This document shows positions 518 to 8,931 of a stretch of DNA of 64,000 bases, piece after piece. Made by a program: the position numbers and the translations under genes. The notes under the pieces were generated by a model, which saw nothing but the letters and a program-made list of their open reading frames with translations, ran no database searches and was not told the DNA's origin. The stretch lies in the sequence record NC_062582.1, one strand, 5' to 3'. Each line of letters starts with the position of its first letter. The first letter of the stretch is position 1.

Positions 518-2203
518 ATGATCAATCTGAACATGGGTGCAACCATCGGCGGTTCGGGCAATACCCGTATCACTATTGAGAACATGATCGCAGTACAGAC
601 TGGTACTTATCAAGATCAGTATGCTCGACCATTCAAGTCTACTGTAAATGATGGCGTTATCGCTGGACTGCGTGAAGTAACTCGTGGTGGTCTTAACCTC
701 GGTGCAGCAGCAGTTCAAGAGATCGCTTGCGGTGTAATTACTCCACAGGCAGAAGTAGAAGGTAAAGTAAACATTGCGAACGGCATGCAATGTCGTCGTT
801 TCCGGATTCTGTTGACCGTTAACGAATCCCATCCATATATCGAAGGCACCACTACCCGTCGTGTGTTCTATGGCTACTCGGATAACAGTGACGCATCCTT
901 GAACTATCTTGATCCGAACATGCGTGTGTATTTCAACAGTGAGACTATCATTGCTGAAGCCATTCGTAATACGATCAATGGCCCACAACGTCAGGCATCT
1001 ATTGTTGCATCTAACCAGATCATCTCTCCGATGGGTCCTGATAACAATGGTCAAGGTAATGGGTTGTTCGCTCGGGCATCGAGTTTCTTGATTCGACCTG
1101 AAGATAACTTTAACCTGATGCAAACCAATATCGTTGCACAGAACCTGAATAGCTCGGGTATGTTCCCAGGTATGGTTGACACTTCCTACGACAACCGTAC
1201 CATGGTTGGTGAAGGTGGTAGCCACAAGTATTCGATGCGTCGTGACACTTCCCCAACTCGTTATCTGTCCGATAGCTTGGCTGCTTATTCTCATGCAATC
1301 AAGGAATCCAAAGATAGCGTAATCAATACTGGTGACTTCAACGATGCGATTACATCTAAAGAAGTTATCTTGGGTGAAGCAGCTGCGGCATGCCGTAACC
1401 ACAACATCCATTCCAATACTTTCCTGAGCGTTCTGAACGATCACTCCGGTTATATGGAACAGGGTTATGTGACCTTCGGTGATCTGTGTCGTATCTTCCC
1501 TGAGATGAACAACCGCGCTGGTTACGATTGTGTTCAGTTCTCCATGGACAATGGTCGCAGTATCCGTAAAGTAATGCAAGCTGGCGATTCACAAGTTTGG
1601 TCCGGTGCTGACTATTCTTCCATCGGTGCTTCTCTGTTGGCTCAAGCAATTCCGTCGATCATGATGGATACCTTCTTCCGTAGCTTTAGCTTTGCGGTAA
1701 CGAATGGTAATGGTAACAACAATTATCTGTTTGAACCACATCCCGATGCATGTAAAGCAATCGTTGGTGGTATTGACATGCGTCAATATTTCCAAGACTT
1801 CGAACGTCGATTGAGCATTGACGTATTGAATAACATCACTCGTGGTAACCAACTACCGTTTAAGATCTCCATGTATTCTGACTTGGTAGGTGACTCGATC
1901 ATCGATATCCAGATTGGTGGTGGTCCTCTGGAACGTTTCATTGCTCCGACCTTTGCGGATAGTCTGTTCAGTCCGGTCATTACTCGTAACCGTTCTCTGG
2001 CAGGCGAGATTGCTGGCGACCTTACTTGGCTCGTGGCAAACGTAATCGAAGGCGATCAGAAACCAACGCAACAGATCTATACTGGCGGTATGTCAAACAC
2101 TAACAGTCTGTTTAGTGAATACCAACACCCAGTAGCTCAACCAGCACTCCTCAACAATTCTCAACAAGGAACTAATCATGTCGCTGACCTTGGCTTGCTA
2201 TAA
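518..2203 (+). CDS. picA: Phage-nucleus protein import factor PicA/Imp1 (phiKZ gp69-like), 561 aa
   Basis: Immediately follows the gp68 homologue as gp69 does in phiKZ; similar size; RBS-like GAGG at 506-509. Assignment mainly by synteny. Confidence 0.72.
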   Translation: MINLNMGATIGGSGNTRITIENMIAVQTGTYQDQYARPFKSTVNDGVIAGLREVTRGGLNLGAAAVQEIACGVITPQAEVEGKVNIANGMQCRRFRILLTVNESHPYIEGTTTRRVFYGYSDNSDASLNYLDPNMRVYFNSETIIAEAIRNTINGPQRQASIVASNQIISPMGPDNNGQGNGLFARASSFLIRPEDNFNLMQTNIVAQNLNSSGMFPGMVDTSYDNRTMVGEGGSHKYSMRRDTSPTRYLSDSLAAYSHAIKESKDSVINTGDFNDAITSKEVILGEAAAACRNHNIHSNTFLSVLNDHSGYMEQGYVTFGDLCRIFPEMNNRAGYDCVQFSMDNGRSIRKVMQAGDSQVWSGADYSSIGASLLAQAIPSIMMDTFFRSFSFAVTNGNGNNNYLFEPHPDACKAIVGGIDMRQYFQDFERRLSIDVLNNITRGNQLPFKISMYSDLVGDSIIDIQIGGGPLERFIAPTFADSLFSPVITRNRSLAGEIAGDLTWLVANVIEGDQKPTQQIYTGGMSNTNSLFSEYQHPVAQPALLNNSQQGTNHVADLGLL

Positions 2204-3512
2204 CGAAATCCTGCCTGCTTTCTCCTGCTCGGTTGATGAGGAGGACATGCTCGATGTTGTCGCTCCTACCGGTGCAAAGAAACCTGCAACAATCGGAGGC
2301 GCCACTCTGGTGCTTCCAACCCAAGCTCGTCTACGGAAAGGTTTCCCTGAAGAACTCTTTCCATTCCACCCGCTCTGTGAATCGATGTCTCGTCAAGGGA
2401 CATCTCCAGTAATCCAATTCCTGCAACGAGCAGCTAAAGCGAACATCTCGTATAGCGTCGTAGCTCTGACTGGACATCTGTTGGAGATCGCATGTGACGT
2501 AAGCATGCATAAAGATCTTCCTCCAGAATGCCTGGACTTCTTGGTGAAGCTCTCTGACTGTGATAAAGAGAAGAACATCAAGCAGGTGTATGAAAAGGTT
2601 GTAGCTGCTGCATCCAAGAAGAACCGCATGACTACGGTCTATCTGAAGAATGGCGGTACATTCGACGGCCAGAAAGTAAACCGTTCGTGTATCATTCGTA
2701 TCCCATTGCTGGAAGACCTCCAACAAGACGGTAAGGATGTTCTGGGCGTAACTGTAACCAAGAAACAGCGTAAGATTCTGACTGCGTTGTTTAAACTGGT
2801 TGTTCCATTCGGTGATAACCCAGAAGAGTATAGCTTCGGTACTACCAGTCGCCAAGCTCCGTACTTCCAGTGTCTGCTGACAGCTTATGCGAAGATCGTT
2901 AAGGTACTGAACCAGTGCATTAATAACTACGCTGTTCCATTGCAGTTGCCAATCAAACCAATCCCAACTTACGATATCAAAGTAATTGAGACGTTTGAGA
3001 AAGCTCGTGCAGAAGTAGACATCCCGCCTCTGCGTGGTAACGAAGGTGGTGTTAAAGAGAACGATCAAGAAGCGTCTGAGACTAAACAACCAGAAGCCCA
3101 AGCACAACAACCACGTGCGACCGTTCAACAGAACACCCGCGAGTCTACTCCACCAGTAGCGGTAAGTACTTCTGCTCCTGGTACTGTGAGTATGGAAGAC
3201 TTCATGAAAGCCAACAACCCTAACCCAGGGATGGTGAACGTGAACTTCAACGGTAACCAACAGCCTAACGTTAATGGTACCTTCGGGCAACAGGGTTTGT
3301 TTGGTGCACAACCAACCGCACAACCTACTCTGTTCGGTAACACTAACACTAGCTTCTCCACTTCACAGCCAACAGGTCTTCCGTGGAACCAACCACAACA
3401 AACACCTGTAAGTAACAGTCTGTTTGGTGGTCCATCTCCAACTCCTGCGTTCCAAACCGGCTTCACCAATAACGGTTTCGGTAACACTGGTGGTGGATTG
3501 GGTCTGATCTAA
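2178..3512 (+). CDS. phiKZ gp70-like nuclear-shell-associated protein with disordered Q/N/P/G/F-rich, FG-containing C-terminal tail, 444 aa
   Basis: AAGGA RBS before ATG; overlaps picA by 26 nt; folded N-terminal ~290 aa then low-complexity tail with TFG, GLFG, TLFG, SLFG, GFG. Confidence 0.65.
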   Translation: MSLTLACYNEILPAFSCSVDEEDMLDVVAPTGAKKPATIGGATLVLPTQARLRKGFPEELFPFHPLCESMSRQGTSPVIQFLQRAAKANISYSVVALTGHLLEIACDVSMHKDLPPECLDFLVKLSDCDKEKNIKQVYEKVVAAASKKNRMTTVYLKNGGTFDGQKVNRSCIIRIPLLEDLQQDGKDVLGVTVTKKQRKILTALFKLVVPFGDNPEEYSFGTTSRQAPYFQCLLTAYAKIVKVLNQCINNYAVPLQLPIKPIPTYDIKVIETFEKARAEVDIPPLRGNEGGVKENDQEASETKQPEAQAQQPRATVQQNTRESTPPVAVSTSAPGTVSMEDFMKANNPNPGMVNVNFNGNQQPNVNGTFGQQGLFGAQPTAQPTLFGNTNTSFSTSQPTGLPWNQPQQTPVSNSLFGGPSPTPAFQTGFTNNGFGNTGGGLGLI

Positions 3513-4743: not shown

Positions 4744-6933
4744 ATGTCGGTGATTGATGAAGTTAACCATGTAGATTACGGTGTCAAAAACCACGGTGAT
4801 TATATCGGGGGTGGTAATAACTTCGGTAGTAAACCAATCCGTAACTTGAAAATGCGCTACATTGGGCATGCTGCGCTTGATCCGTATTATGGTGTTACCT
4901 CTGCTGCTCGGGGTGCAATGTTCCTGACTCACATTGGTCAGGCTCCGGTAATCGAAGGTAACGAACCACGTCGTGTAATGACTGGCGTGGAAATGAACTT
5001 TGCTGAAACGTCTTTCGATATTCGTCTACCGAAAGATTGCACTATCCTTAACGTTGTTCGAAAGTATCCTACTGGTCATGGTTTGGATTCTATTCAACAC
5101 AACCCGGTTACTACAATCATCTACGAGGAATTCTACGACGAGTTCAAAAGGATTGGTGTACTGCATGTTCCTGAATATGTTGCAGACTATCACCAGACCT
5201 TTGGCTTTAAACTAGAAAAGGATAAAGCTGTATGGGATCGCATTCGTCCTGACGAGATGCTTCCAAAAGATACAGTACTTGCACGTTCCACAACCATTAA
5301 GAAAGATGGTCTGTTGGGCATGGGTGTAAACCTTAACGCTGCATTCTATTCTGGCCCAGGTACTATTGAAGACGGGTTCATCATCAGTGAGGAATGTCTT
5401 GACCTATTGTCTCCACGTGCTTATACCACAGCTACAGGTGGATGTGGACGTAAGTCTTACTTCCTCAACATGTATGGCGATGACAAGATCTATAAACCAT
5501 TCCCGGATATTGGCGAACGTATCCGAGATGATGGTGTAATCTTTGCGGTACGTGATCATGATGATGATCTGTCTCCAGCAGAAATGACTCCTCGTGCTTT
5601 GCGTGAACTTGATCGTACCTTTGACCGGGCAGTTATTGGCGATCCTGGTAGTCTTGTAAAAGACATCAAGGTCTATATGGACGAACGTCAGAATCCTTCT
5701 TATATCCCGATGGGTATGGATGGACAACTGCGTAAGTATTACGATGCGTTGAGTAACTATTATCGTGAGATCATTCGGATCTATCGGACATTGCAAGGTC
5801 GTCGTAAAGATCGTCTGCGCATTACCGAAGAATTGAGTTCTCTGATTGTAGAGGCGATGATCTATCTGCCACAAACAGGTGACCAGCGTAAACTGACGCG
5901 GACCTATCGTCTGGATACTTTGGATGAATGCCGTGTTGAGATCACTTATGAAACCATCAAACGTCCAGGGGGTGCATTTAAGCTAACCGACTTCCACGGT
6001 GGTAAAGGTGTAATCTGTAAAGTAATGCCTCGTGCATTGATGCCACGTGATAAATGGGGTAACATCTGTGACGTAGGTATCTTCGGTGGTTCGACTATGC
6101 GTCGATCTAACTATGGTCGAATCTATGAACATGGTTTCGGTGCAGCCTCTCGTGATCTGTCTCAACGTCTGCGTATTGAAGCTGGTTTGGATCGTCATGC
6201 TAAGTTGACTGTGAATGAAGTTAAAGCTTCTCCACAACTGCAAGACAACGCTTGGGTCGAATACGCGTTTGCTGAACTTCAAGACTTCTATGCGTTGATC
6301 ACTGTTGACATGCATGAGATCTTGAAGACTCACCCTGACAAGAGACAGTATGTTGCTCAGGTTATGGCAGACGGTTTCAGCTACATCTATAGTCCAATTG
6401 AAGATCAGGTGCATTTGCCAAAAGCAATGACCGCATTGATTAACAGTCGTTTCTGTCCAAACTACGATAAGGTGACCTATACTGACCAAGCGGGTAACTT
6501 CCGTGAAACCAAAGATAAGATCCTGATTGGCCCACTGTACATGATGCTGTTGGAAAAGATCGGTGATGACTGGTCCTCCGTAGCTTCTGTTAAAGTACAA
6601 CAGTTTGGCTTGCCGTCTAAGTTGAACAACAGTGATCGTAGTTCTACACCTGGTCGTGAAACAGCAATCCGTTCTTTCGGCGAATCTGAAACACGTTCTT
6701 ATAACTGTACGGTAGGTCCAGTACCAACGCTAGAACTCTTGGACCAAACTAACAACCCGCAGTCTCACAAGTCGGTAATTGAATCGCTGTTGACGAGTGA
6801 GTATAGTAGTAACATTGAACGTGCAGTAAACCGTGAAGAGATTCCTTATGGTAATAGCCGTCCAGTGAACCTATTGGATCACTTGCTGGAATGCGCGGAT
6901 ATCCGTTTGGTGTATGCTGAAAGTCGTAATTGA
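4744..6933 (+). CDS. Non-virion RNA polymerase beta subunit, C-terminal half (phiKZ gp71-73-like), uninterrupted, 729 aa
   Basis: RGAMFLTHIGQA, EDGFIISE, KLTDFHGGKGVI, RRSNYGRIYE, GPLYMMLLEK, RSFGESETR correspond to conserved beta-subunit regions. Confidence 0.93.
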   Translation: MSVIDEVNHVDYGVKNHGDYIGGGNNFGSKPIRNLKMRYIGHAALDPYYGVTSAARGAMFLTHIGQAPVIEGNEPRRVMTGVEMNFAETSFDIRLPKDCTILNVVRKYPTGHGLDSIQHNPVTTIIYEEFYDEFKRIGVLHVPEYVADYHQTFGFKLEKDKAVWDRIRPDEMLPKDTVLARSTTIKKDGLLGMGVNLNAAFYSGPGTIEDGFIISEECLDLLSPRAYTTATGGCGRKSYFLNMYGDDKIYKPFPDIGERIRDDGVIFAVRDHDDDLSPAEMTPRALRELDRTFDRAVIGDPGSLVKDIKVYMDERQNPSYIPMGMDGQLRKYYDALSNYYREIIRIYRTLQGRRKDRLRITEELSSLIVEAMIYLPQTGDQRKLTRTYRLDTLDECRVEITYETIKRPGGAFKLTDFHGGKGVICKVMPRALMPRDKWGNICDVGIFGGSTMRRSNYGRIYEHGFGAASRDLSQRLRIEAGLDRHAKLTVNEVKASPQLQDNAWVEYAFAELQDFYALITVDMHEILKTHPDKRQYVAQVMADGFSYIYSPIEDQVHLPKAMTALINSRFCPNYDKVTYTDQAGNFRETKDKILIGPLYMMLLEKIGDDWSSVASVKVQQFGLPSKLNNSDRSSTPGRETAIRSFGESETRSYNCTVGPVPTLELLDQTNNPQSHKSVIESLLTSEYSSNIERAVNREEIPYGNSRPVNLLDHLLECADIRLVYAESRN

Positions 6934-6945
6934 TAGGTGTAGATA

Positions 6946-8931
6946 ATGAACCAACCTCGTAAACTGAATGTGTACAAAGCGCGTGACTTGTTGAACATGA
7001 CTTCGGATGAGCTTTGTGCTCTTCCGGATGAATGGCATAAGATCGAGTTTGATGATGGTGAGTTGATTACAATCGATCGTCAAACCAAAGTGTCGGTGTT
7101 GTTGTGGGGACCACTCAAGTCGTTCCCTGACGCACCTATCCTTAAATCGTTTCACTTGGATAAGACTCGGATTACTTCCAAGTCGTTGGTTAAACTGCTC
7201 AACGGTATTATCTGGTCGATCTATGATTGGGGTAAAGGTTCTATTACCCCAGACACCATTGCACGGTTGGCGATTGAAGCTAAGTCGAAGTTCTATAATG
7301 AAGCAACAACTAAGTTCAGTGCGTATGTTTCCACACTGAGTATGTTTGAGATCGCAGAGGTTTATAACCATCCTGAGATCCGTGCTGCTAACGAGAACTT
7401 CGAACCAACTACGTATGGTATCGAGAAGGTTGCTTATGAACGGATTAAAGCTGTTATGTTTAATCCGGATAACTTCAAAGGCAATAGTATCATTGAAGGT
7501 CTGAAGTCGGGTACTCAAAAGACTGAACAGCTGTTGCAAGCATTTGGTCCACGAGGATTCCCAACTGACATTAACTCTGACATCTTTCCGCATCCTGTAA
7601 CGACGGGTTACATTGAGGGTGTATGGGATCACTATGAGAACATGGTTGAATCTCGTTCGGGTACTAAAGCTTCTCTTTATAACAAAGAGTTGTTGCGGGT
7701 AACTGAATACTTTAACCGGAAGTCTCAGCTGATCGCTCAGTATGTAATGCGTTTGCATCGTACTGACTGTGGTGCTGACTATGTTCGATTCCCTGTGCTT
7801 AAGGTTTTCCTTAAGCAGATGAACGGGAAGTTCTGGTTCAACGAAGAAACTGGTAAAGAAGAAATCCTGACTGGTAAAGAAGAGCACTTGATCGGTAAGA
7901 AGATCCTGATGCGTTCTGTACTGGGTTGTGTCCATAAGGACTCTCAGGGGATCTGTGCGAAGTGTTATGGTCTGCTTGCGGATAACATCCCACTGGGTTC
8001 TAACATCGGTCAGATCGCAGCTGTATCCATGGGCGACAAGATTACCTCTGCGGTATTGTCGACTAAGCATACTGACGCAACTTCTGCGGTAGAACAATAT
8101 CAGATTGCGGGTATTGAAGCTAACTATCTAAAAGAGGGTAAGCTATCGGAAACACTCTATCTACGGAAAGAGCTTGATGGGAAAGGTTATCGATTGTTGA
8201 TCAGTAGTAACGAAGCCACTAACCTGGCTGACATTCTAATGATTGATAACTTGACAGCTTATCCGGCAACTCAAGCTTCTGAGCTTAATCGGATTGGTTT
8301 GGTTCGTGATGTCAATGATGAGGTTGTAGGGGATATCTTGACGGTGAGTTTGTATAACCGTCGGGCTAGTCTGAGTACAGCTATGTTGGAACATGCCAAA
8401 CTGGTAGGATGGACTCCGGACAACCGAGGGAATATCGTAATCGAGCTGGAAGGTTTTGACTTCACTCAACCGTTCCTGACTCTGCCATATAAGCACGTTA
8501 ACATGTACGAAGTAATGAAGCGAATCCAAAGCTTCCTGCACTCCGGTAGTGATAACGAAGGTTCCAAACTGTCTTCAGATAAGGTAGGTTTTACTAGCAA
8601 GACTTATCTTAAGAACTACACAGACGTCATCGATGCTACTGTTGCGTTTGCTTCACTCGTATGCGAGAAGATTGCACTGCCTTTGCCACACTGTGAGATG
8701 TTGGTGTATGCTATGACAGTTAAATCTACCGCCAATAAAGATTATAACCTACCTAAACCTGGGATCTCAGGTCAGTTTGAGAAATATAGCAAGCTGATGC
8801 ATTCCCGTAGTCTCGGTGGTGCCATGTCTTTCGAGAAGCAACATGAGCCATTGATCAACCCCGCTAGTTACCTGTATACCAACAGGAACGACCATCCTTA
8901 CGATTTCGCTATGAAAGGTGGTAAGCTCTAA
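6946..8931 (+). CDS. Non-virion RNA polymerase beta' subunit, C-terminal half (phiKZ gp74-like), 661 aa
   Basis: Bridge-helix region ESRSGTKAS...TEYFNRK, DCG, Zn motif CVHKDSQGICAKCYG, trigger-loop NIGQIAAVSMGDKITSAVLSTKH. Confidence 0.93.
   Translation: MNQPRKLNVYKARDLLNMTSDELCALPDEWHKIEFDDGELITIDRQTKVSVLLWGPLKSFPDAPILKSFHLDKTRITSKSLVKLLNGIIWSIYDWGKGSITPDTIARLAIEAKSKFYNEATTKFSAYVSTLSMFEIAEVYNHPEIRAANENFEPTTYGIEKVAYERIKAVMFNPDNFKGNSIIEGLKSGTQKTEQLLQAFGPRGFPTDINSDIFPHPVTTGYIEGVWDHYENMVESRSGTKASLYNKELLRVTEYFNRKSQLIAQYVMRLHRTDCGADYVRFPVLKVFLKQMNGKFWFNEETGKEEILTGKEEHLIGKKILMRSVLGCVHKDSQGICAKCYGLLADNIPLGSNIGQIAAVSMGDKITSAVLSTKHTDATSAVEQYQIAGIEANYLKEGKLSETLYLRKELDGKGYRLLISSNEATNLADILMIDNLTAYPATQASELNRIGLVRDVNDEVVGDILTVSLYNRRASLSTAMLEHAKLVGWTPDNRGNIVIELEGFDFTQPFLTLPYKHVNMYEVMKRIQSFLHSGSDNEGSKLSSDKVGFTSKTYLKNYTDVIDATVAFASLVCEKIALPLPHCEMLVYAMTVKSTANKDYNLPKPGISGQFEKYSKLMHSRSLGGAMSFEKQHEPLINPASYLYTNRNDHPYDFAMKGGKL

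Follow-up and report, generated by a model that had tools for sequence, protein, structure and literature searches.

Passage of folded proteins across the closed chimallin (ChmA) lattice is the main question of phage-nucleus biology, and we know of no channel or gating material that has been identified for this compartment. PicA, also called Imp1, is a nuclear import factor and licenses cargo. The lattice itself is built by peptides from an N-terminal segment (NTS) and C-terminal segments (CTS) of chimallin that dock onto neighbouring protomers (10.1101/2022.02.14.480162). The 64,000-nucleotide (nt) stretch of record NC_062582.1 that was analysed here, all of which is called the window, comes from Pseudomonas phage Phabio (100% identity to MF042360, the first base of the window being genome base 62,001), a jumbo phage that resembles phiKZ and has P. 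fluorescens SBW25 as its host. It carries the gene PHABIO_106 in the position characteristic of its family, directly downstream of PicA/Imp1 and within the gene block of nvRNAP, a non-virion RNA polymerase. The C-terminal tail of the PHABIO_106 protein was found to be a low-complexity extension, predicted to be disordered, in which hydrophobic residues are conserved and evenly spaced. In 13 phages of the family, the composition of this tail varies together with that of the chimallin and PicA tails of the same phage.

PHABIO_106 belongs to a chimallivirus core family, called here the gp70 family, with phiKZ gp70, PhiPA3 gp64, 201phi2-1 gp126 and Goslar gp173 as orthologues. According to one report, PhiPA3 gp64 is expressed early, localises to the nuclear shell as a green fluorescent protein (GFP) fusion, is labelled in ChmA and RecA proximity experiments and is recovered together with PicA (gp63) in ChmB-GFP pulldowns, and the Phabio protein is listed there as a gp64 homologue (PMC10643120). 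phiKZ gp70 is among the listed nuclear proteins and did not copurify with Imp1 on coexpression in E. coli, and Goslar gp173, nicknamed Taileboi, is called a 'known nuclear-localized protein' in an October 2026 preprint. In a transposon screen of phiKZ, orf70 was hit hardly at all: the trimmed table lists 1 insertion site with 3 reads and the overall counts are 5 sites with 8 reads, and a small neighbouring gene had 135-238 reads (PMC12676376); the orthologues of PHABIO_106 are probably essential. Neither FG (Phe-Gly), nucleoporin-like or low-complexity features of the gp70-family protein, nor a link between the phage nucleus and FG- or nucleoporin-like sequences, were found mentioned in the accessible literature, and gp70 does not appear in the interaction proteomics or in the preprint on RNA polymerase import. 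Both the protein family and its association with the shell are already known; new with respect to the searchable literature are the grammar of the tail, the FG flavour that it has in the Phabio clade and the way in which it co-varies with the tails of chimallin and PicA.

A preliminary description of this DNA, prepared from its letters without database searches, had drawn attention to a 444-residue open reading frame (ORF) with a Q/N/T/P/G-rich tail of about 100 residues, uncharged from NNPNPG onwards and carrying spaced FG motifs, and this much was confirmed. From NNPNPG (residue 346, nt 3213) to the C terminus there are 99 residues and not one Asp, Glu, Lys or Arg. The tail is composed of G (17%), N (16%), P (12%), T (12%), Q (11%) and F (9%), with G, N, P, T and Q together making up 69% and Q, N, G, P, S and T 74% of its residues. 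The five FG dipeptides stand in TFG, GLFG, TLFG, SLFG and GFG contexts and define an FG-bearing core at residues 368-435 (nt 3279-3482). Given 9 Phe and 17 Gly, shuffled tails contain 1.55 FG on average (P = 0.007). The spacing of Phe, Tyr and Trp is more even than expected by chance (z = -1.77, 0 of 400 shuffles). The beginning of the tail had been placed at nt 2900 (residue 241), which lies inside the folded domain and about 100 codons too early; the tail corresponds to nt 3213-3509. Among the plausible genes of the window, a charge-free run of 100 residues occurs in PHABIO_106 alone. An origin of the tail from tandem DNA repeats was discarded, none being found in the region.

Disorder of the tail was assessed with an AlphaFold2 model of PHABIO_106 built on 60 relatives. 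The predicted local distance difference test score (pLDDT) was mostly below 50 over residues 296-444, with the exception of a helix at residues 339-345, and ranged between 37 and 52 over residues 351-444, so that the model, as the preliminary description had led us to expect, predicts a disordered tail. The Phabio tail has the features of a sticker-and-spacer sequence: it is of low complexity, polar, free of charge and predicted to be disordered, with evenly spaced aromatic residues.

The tail had also been likened to the GLFG nucleoporins. Published Nup98-type domains contain 6.3-10.3 FG per 100 residues, 13-17% F+I+L+V+M, 0-0.5% D+E and 0.1-2.3% R+K; the listed Nup98 domains have 479-581 residues with 39-46 FG, the overall range running from 200 (Nup145N) to 740 residues, and SLFG and GLFG motifs with N/Q-rich spacers are the fungal preference (PMC4283134). 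The Phabio tail resembles these domains in the lack of charge, the SLFG and GLFG motifs and the N/Q-rich spacers, and falls short of them in FG density, length and profile score. When the tail alone was compared with Pfam, the best match was Nucleoporin_FG (PF13634; E = 0.023), at 16.0 bits against a cut-off of 32.2 bits, and the same family was matched by 3 of 60 relatives (best E = 1e-3). The whole PHABIO_106 protein gave no match in Pfam. Because the score lies below the cut-off, the likeness is taken as compositional. Homology to nucleoporins was rejected on the strength of the subthreshold Pfam score and of a tail-only search of 5.8 billion proteins, which matched the closest relatives alone.

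Conservation of the tail was examined in 198 members of the family, with statistics calculated over the last 100 residues. Every one of the 198 carries a tail, with lengths between 116 and 299 residues. The FG enrichment that the preliminary description had anticipated among orthologues was not found: 120 of the 198 tails have no FG at all and 19 have at least three, 12 of these being Phabio-like (11 full-length relatives and the fragment P0054). Close relatives of Phabio have 2-6 FG per 100 residues, and FG-like dialects, as we call the compositional types of tail, recur in a few unrelated distant members. What the 198 tails have in common is a median of 4.5 charged residues, a mean of 23 Gln plus Asn, 15 Pro and 13 Gly, and a content of Phe, Tyr, Met and Trp of 15.3 +/- 4.6. 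The dominant residue among these candidate stickers is Tyr in 71 tails, Phe in 67, Met in 54 and Trp in 6. Phe, Tyr and Trp are also evenly spaced in the family at large, with z averaging -1.0 and p<=0.05 reached by 27-43% of tails, and the control residues Gly, Gln, Asn, Ser, Thr and Ala are evenly spaced in at most 4% of tails.

The dialects differ greatly between lineages. The tails of phiKZ, PhiPA3, RAY and RisingSun are Met/Gln-rich, those of SPN3US and Wellington Gly/Ser/Leu-rich, and those of PCH45, RSL2 and FBKp24 strongly charged and rich in Arg, Asp and Tyr; many distant members have Tyr in a Gly/Gln/Pro context. Among the 11 sequences of the Phabio-like clade, whose overall identity is 65-77%, Phe is conserved at six positions in 82-100% of cases, both [ST]LFG motifs and Trp403 are invariant and the GLGLI tip is nearly so (one GLGLL). 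In the spacers of this clade, Thr, Ala and Ser are kept in just 9-32% and insertions and deletions are frequent. The alignment of orthologues that had been proposed for judging FG conservation therefore gives a split answer, in which stickers are conserved and spacers are not, as foreseen, and the sticker is FG only locally. Judged from these sequences, the conserved feature is a low-complexity, usually charge-poor tail of 100-300 residues with evenly spaced aromatics, of which FG is one local dialect.

These data bear on the suggestion that the tail forms an FG-type selective phase, acting as a permeability barrier or in cargo handling, where PicA marks a site of import in the shell. Its Nup98-type composition, charge-free and with SLFG and GLFG in N/Q-rich spacers, would suit such a phase, as would the Phe positions kept in the Phabio-like clade, the weak best Pfam match to Nucleoporin_FG, the independent recurrence of FG-like dialects in distant members, and a gene that adjoins PicA and whose PhiPA3 orthologue lies at the shell and copurified with PicA in the ChmB pulldown. 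However, most orthologues have no FG, and a hydrophobic barrier of this type is impossible for the tails of PCH45, RSL2 and FBKp24 because they are highly charged. The Phabio tail also offers 99 residues and five FG, at a density below the Nup98 range, where nucleoporin domains offer about 480-740 residues and about 40 FG. Furthermore, phiKZ gp70 did not bind Imp1 on coexpression, PicA forms a single punctum, cargo selection maps to surfaces of PicA and no analogue of a transport receptor is known. We regard the FG phase as very unlikely, and a convergent permeability barrier is unlikely to be the conserved function of the family; the earlier proposal is supported in part, by the uncharged, FG-bearing tail, the PicA neighbour, the shell-located PhiPA3 orthologue that copurifies with ChmB and PicA, and the Phe positions kept in the Phabio-like clade while spacers diverge.

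The relationship between the tail and the shell was studied by comparison with chimallin. Phabio chimallin was identified as PHABIO_82 through the chimallin entries of the PDB (E = 1e-208 or better), and a single-protein scan of the sequence collection for ChmA matched Phabio alone. PHABIO_82 has uncharged F/Q/N/G-rich flexible segments, and in 85 kb of Phabio uncharged polar-aromatic segments of at least 25 residues are found only in ChmA and PHABIO_106. The hexamer TFGQQG is common to the tail and ChmA residues 618-623, and NSLF is common to the tail, ChmA residues 47-50 and the PicA tail (shuffle P about 0.01-0.03 in both cases); alignment to 201phi2-1 chimallin places the two motifs in CTS2 (619-628) and the NTS (44-57), respectively. 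An internal uncharged Phe/Gln-rich stretch that includes one FG is also present in PHABIO_82 at residues 295-324. Literal mimicry of chimallin docking peptides was rejected as a general rule, Phabio being alone in it among the phages compared.

Composition was then compared across 13 phages, with the folded-protein background of each phage subtracted and the kinship of the phages left uncorrected. The tail resembled the C-terminal 45 residues of its own ChmA with a cosine of 0.564, against 0.256 for the ChmA of other phages, a value reached in 0 of 50,000 permutations, and in nine phages the own ChmA ranked 1-3 of 13. The co-variation was retained when each dialect class was represented by a single phage (P = 6e-4) and when the Arg/Asp class was left out (P = 0.0024), and the tail likewise matched the C-terminal 35 residues of PicA (P = 6e-5). 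In PCH45, RSL2 and FBKp24 both chimallin termini share the Arg/Asp/Tyr-rich character of the gp70-family tail, and in SPN3US and Wellington chimallin, PicA and the gp70-family tail are all Gly/Leu/Ser-rich. Controls with folded segments gave P values of 0.47, 0.019, 0.39 and 0.99.

A further control was provided by ChmC (Imp6), reportedly an RNA-binding, shell-associated protein that phase-separates with RNA. The ChmC tail showed no co-variation with ChmA or with the gp70-family tail (P = 0.78 and 0.92). Its type was constant in 11 of 11 lineages checked, including those with Arg/Asp-rich chimallin and gp70-family tails, and it serves as an internal negative control because it keeps one dialect in every lineage. 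In Phabio itself, the ChmC/Imp6 orthologue (genome 60054-60803, just upstream of the window) has a Gly/Gln/Asn-rich tail with an acidic-aromatic tip. Genome-wide composition was dismissed as the cause of dialect sharing, since the folded controls and ChmC were negative once the folded background had been subtracted; an earlier version of the test, with a global background, had left some signal in the folded controls.

One interpretation of these data, which we favour tentatively and hold to be possible rather than probable, is that the tail acts as a cohesive tether of the sticker-and-spacer kind, matched to chimallin, and keeps the N-terminal domain close to PicA at the shell. Many weak contacts would be made by hydrophobic stickers (Phe in FG and LFG in Phabio; Tyr, Met or Leu elsewhere) set at even intervals in an uncharged polar spacer. 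The tail would share its compositional dialect with the flexible segments by which the two ends of chimallin link the lattice and, because the dialect is common to both, would be expected to associate with those segments or with their docking grooves, and the N-terminal domain would thereby be held at the shell, next to PicA. That the composition of the tail follows that of the chimallin tails points to shell tethering rather than to a stand-alone barrier. The sequence analysis shows the anatomy, the predicted disorder, the conservation and spacing of the stickers and the co-variation, and the localisation and probable essentiality of orthologues come from publications; a physical contact between tail and chimallin, the role of the N-terminal domain at that place and any role in transport are inferred.

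Several observations weigh against such a tether. Exact sharing of motifs with ChmA segments was not seen in PhiPA3, 201phi2-1, phiKZ or Noxifer. The co-variation became borderline when the Arg/Asp and Gly/Ser/Leu classes were both left out (P = 0.06), composition matching was not significant among the five Pseudomonas phages alone (P = 0.21), and for PhiPA3 and RisingSun the match between the tail and the ChmA of the same phage was poor (ranks 7 and 9 of 13). The permutation P values are optimistic, because the phages are phylogenetically related. phiKZ gp70 and Goslar gp173 have been described as nuclear rather than as shell proteins, and two antisense oligomers against PHIKZ070 carry no phenotype mark in the table of a screen (PMC12571901).

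The nuclear descriptions would agree better with an intranuclear scaffold, in which a condensate-forming tail would organise factors of transcription or replication, any signal at the shell being secondary. Evenly spaced aromatic stickers are a hallmark of condensate-forming prion-like domains, the gene lies inside the nvRNAP block in every lineage, and the literature counts phiKZ gp70 and Goslar gp173 among the nuclear-localised proteins. Uncharged-aromatic tails and mixed-charge Arg/Asp tails are both classical condensate drivers, which counts in favour of the scaffold. PhiPA3 gp64 is, however, clearly at the shell, and passages on the nvRNAP (gp62-GFP) pulldown name its five subunits and two tail proteins, with gp64 unmentioned. 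A scaffold would also leave unexplained why the dialect tracks chimallin and PicA tails but not those of ChmC, and we consider it unlikely.

Alternatively, the tail could serve mainly as a passive and flexible spacer, by which the short docking tip GLGLI is offered to a receptor common with PicA, which ends in DLGLL, the FG motifs being incidental. The two tips resemble each other within the genome (PicA, window 2189-2200; PHABIO_106, 3495-3509). Tips of both proteins were alike within genomes in a set of 25 distinct gene pairs, mostly of the Pseudomonas-type clade, as in LGLL/LGLI, FGLL/xxLL, FEGL/xxGL, DSGLL/DSGRL and, in Goslar, ...NF/...RF. The last residue is Leu, Ile, Val, Met or Phe in 24 of 25 PicA proteins and 23 of 25 gp70-family proteins, compared with 24% of 357 background ORFs, and GLGLI is nearly invariant in the Phabio-like clade. 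Note, however, that the match breaks down in most of the deeper lineages, with RR or R at the end of many tails and F, Y or N at that of PicA. The start of the next gene overlaps the PicA tip and constrains it as well, PicA with a C-terminal tag still localises, and a passive spacer would not keep even aromatics or conserved Phe positions. A tip common with PicA was rejected as a universal feature, as it is seen in Pseudomonas/Xanthomonas-type and SPN3US/Wellington-type lineages and breaks down in most other deep ones. Given the failure in deep lineages and the constraint from the gene overlap, the similarity is a clade-level lead only, and the docking-tip explanation appears quite improbable.

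Tolerated, functionless drift of low-complexity sequence would account for a tail that aligns poorly between clades, changes its composition radically between lineages and finds only the closest relatives in a tail-only search. Drift is hard to reconcile with a tail in all 198 members whose stickers are stable in number (15.3 +/- 4.6 per 100) and regular in spacing, with Phe, Trp and tip positions kept within clades and conserved linker motifs, or with co-variation specific to the ChmA and PicA tails, and it is scarcely credible here.

The protein that carries the tail was characterised by homology and structure prediction. PHABIO_106 is 49% identical to phiKZ gp70 (BLASTP, E = 1e-91) and matches phrog_3520 at E = 1.6e-123. 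Relatives were present in 222-228 phage records (tblastn), and an exhaustive search with the N-terminal domain returned 1,426 cluster representatives at E<=1e-3; scans of the sequence collection with the family alignment gave few loci (16 viral and 12 metagenomic). Hosts of the relatives include Pseudomonas, Erwinia, Salmonella, Serratia, Ralstonia, Klebsiella, Vibrio, Escherichia and others. Over the N-terminal domain, the proteins of Pseudomonas phages are 49-58% identical to PHABIO_106 and those of Goslar, RAY and PCH45 25-30%, and 35 alignment columns are invariant among 60 sequences of the family. Sequence and profile searches of Pfam, NCBIfam and the PDB gave no match to this domain, a Foldseek comparison with the PDB gave a best E value of 0.45 and a structure search of BFVD returned jumbo-phage orthologues only. 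The predicted structure is a new fold. Kinship to PicA was ruled out, hhalign against a PicA alignment showing none.

Between the domain and the tail, the linker region has invariant or near-invariant columns at G287, N288, E289, G290, S338, F342 and P348 in the 60 sequences. The helix at residues 339-345 appears in the AlphaFold2 model, and equivalent linker motifs are present in distant members. Two database annotations of orthologues were noted in passing. In phiKZ (AF399011, 61258-61327), homology to PHABIO_106 begins 23 codons before the annotated PHIKZ070 start, overlapping the end of gp69, and the annotated start is for this reason probably too far downstream. The orthologue of phage Churi (GenBank OM718002) is annotated 'Med15 subunit of mediator complex protein', a label that is almost certainly a low-complexity artefact of its Gln-rich tail.

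The features of the region are collected in Table 1. The upstream gene is the PicA/Imp1 orthologue, as the preliminary description had recognised: PHABIO_105 is 49% identical to phiKZ gp69 over 545 residues (E = 1e-172) and its C terminus is a short disordered tail ending in ...DLGLL. The -26 nt overlap of the PicA and gp70-family genes has the same length in 14 of 25 distinct gene pairs, a recurrence suggesting that their translation is coupled and that the C-terminal tip of PicA is doubly constrained. The order of a gp68-like nvRNAP subunit, PicA, the gp70-family gene, a small reverse gene and nvRNAP beta was the same in 18 of 18 named phages inspected. In all lineages that were examined, PHABIO_107 kept its place on the opposite strand, with the gp70-family gene on one side and nvRNAP beta on the other, and PHABIO_112 is the marker of this conserved gene block. 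PHIKZ070.01, the phiKZ counterpart of PHABIO_107, has zero insertions in the trimmed transposon table. In the disordered tail of PicA (window 2120-2146), a short motif, which reads YQHPVAQPA in both Phabio and phiKZ, is nearly identical across phiKZ, PhiPA3, 201phi2-1 and several metagenomic relatives; it may be a binding motif.

Table 1. Coordinates of features around PHABIO_106, numbered from the first base of the window
Feature	Position	Strand	Basis or remark
PicA/Imp1 orthologue PHABIO_105, nuclear import factor, 561 aa	518..2203	+	homology, phrog_3141, annotation
Overlap of PicA and gp70-family genes, 26 nt, different frames	2178..2203	+	last 8 and first 8 codons
gp70-family gene PHABIO_106, annotated hypothetical protein, 444 aa	2178..3512	+	BLASTP, phrog_3520
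Predicted folded N-terminal domain, alpha/beta, aa 1-282	2178..3023	+	pLDDT above 90 (AlphaFold2)
Acidic linker, aa 283-345	3024..3212	+	
Invariant GNEG motif, aa 287-290	3036-3047	+	
Conserved short helix SMEDFMK, aa 339-345	3192-3212	+	part of motif [ST]-x-S-M-x-[DE]-F..A.NP
Uncharged low-complexity tail, aa 346-444, 9 Phe, 1 Trp, 5 FG	3213..3509	+	
C-terminal hydrophobic tip GLGLI	3495..3509	+	clade conservation; resembles PicA tip DLGLL of the same genome
Small conserved gene PHABIO_107, 121 aa	3549..3914	-	phrog_3455 E 6e-39; synteny
Non-virion RNA polymerase beta-like subunit PHABIO_112	4744..6933	+	phrog_3295 E 1.9e-245; annotation
Non-virion RNA polymerase beta'-like subunit PHABIO_113	6946..8931	+	annotation

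Taken at its furthest, the tether interpretation would let gp70-family and chimallin tails intermingle at lattice openings beside PicA and form a cohesive, selectively permeable plug for licensed cargo. This is a bold extension to which we attach little probability; if true, the plug would be an independently evolved viral counterpart, in bacteria, of the FG barrier, with lineage-specific sticker dialects and FG as the dialect of Phabio. The analysis characterises a conserved, probably essential neighbour of PicA as a predicted new-fold domain with a tail tuned per lineage to the chimallin and PicA tails, and offers the hypothesis that this tail tethers the protein to the lattice or, at the extreme, contributes to a gel-like plug. 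The co-variation of dialects, with ChmC as internal negative control, is a comparative signal open to checking in hundreds of genomes. The tail is, in addition, one of few examples of a sticker-and-spacer low-complexity grammar, FG flavour included, that is conserved in a bacterial virus.

Compared with its own orthologues, PHABIO_106 has the same position after PicA and the same architecture of N-terminal domain, linker and disordered tail, but its tail is of the FG/LFG type whereas those of phiKZ and PhiPA3 are Met/Gln-rich and that of Goslar is shorter and partly charged. The NTS, CTS1 and CTS2 of chimallin are, like the gp70-family tail, flexible extensions of a shell-associated protein and share its lineage-specific composition in the 13 phages; they differ in being peptides of 10-22 residues that are ordered and docked in solved structures, whereas the tail has about 100 residues and is predicted to be disordered, and in Phabio ChmA ends in ...SFY and the tail in ...GLI. 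ChmC/Imp6 (phiKZ gp67) comes from the same conserved gene block, is nucleus-associated and also has a low-complexity end, but this end has a single dialect in all lineages, without co-variation with the gp70-family tail.

The Nup98-type FG domains and the Phabio tail have in common the absence of charge, spacers rich in N, Q, T, S, G and P, regularly placed Phe in SLFG, GLFG and TFG, and predicted disorder. The Phabio tail differs in its 5.05 FG per 100 residues, just below the published range, in its F+I+L+V+M content of 21% and in its length, 99 residues with five FG being about one fifth of Nup98. The phage barrier is, moreover, a protein lattice and not a pore scaffold, and FG is not kept in the orthologues. 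At the level of sequence, the likeness to nucleoporins is compositional and partial, and the tail is not classed with the FG nucleoporins. Prion-like domains of the FUS and hnRNPA1 type resemble the gp70-family tails in their uncharged polar sequence and even aromatics, many of the tails having Tyr in a Gly/Gln/Pro context; the gp70-family tails are shorter, belong to bacterial viruses and include Met and Leu stickers and charged variants.

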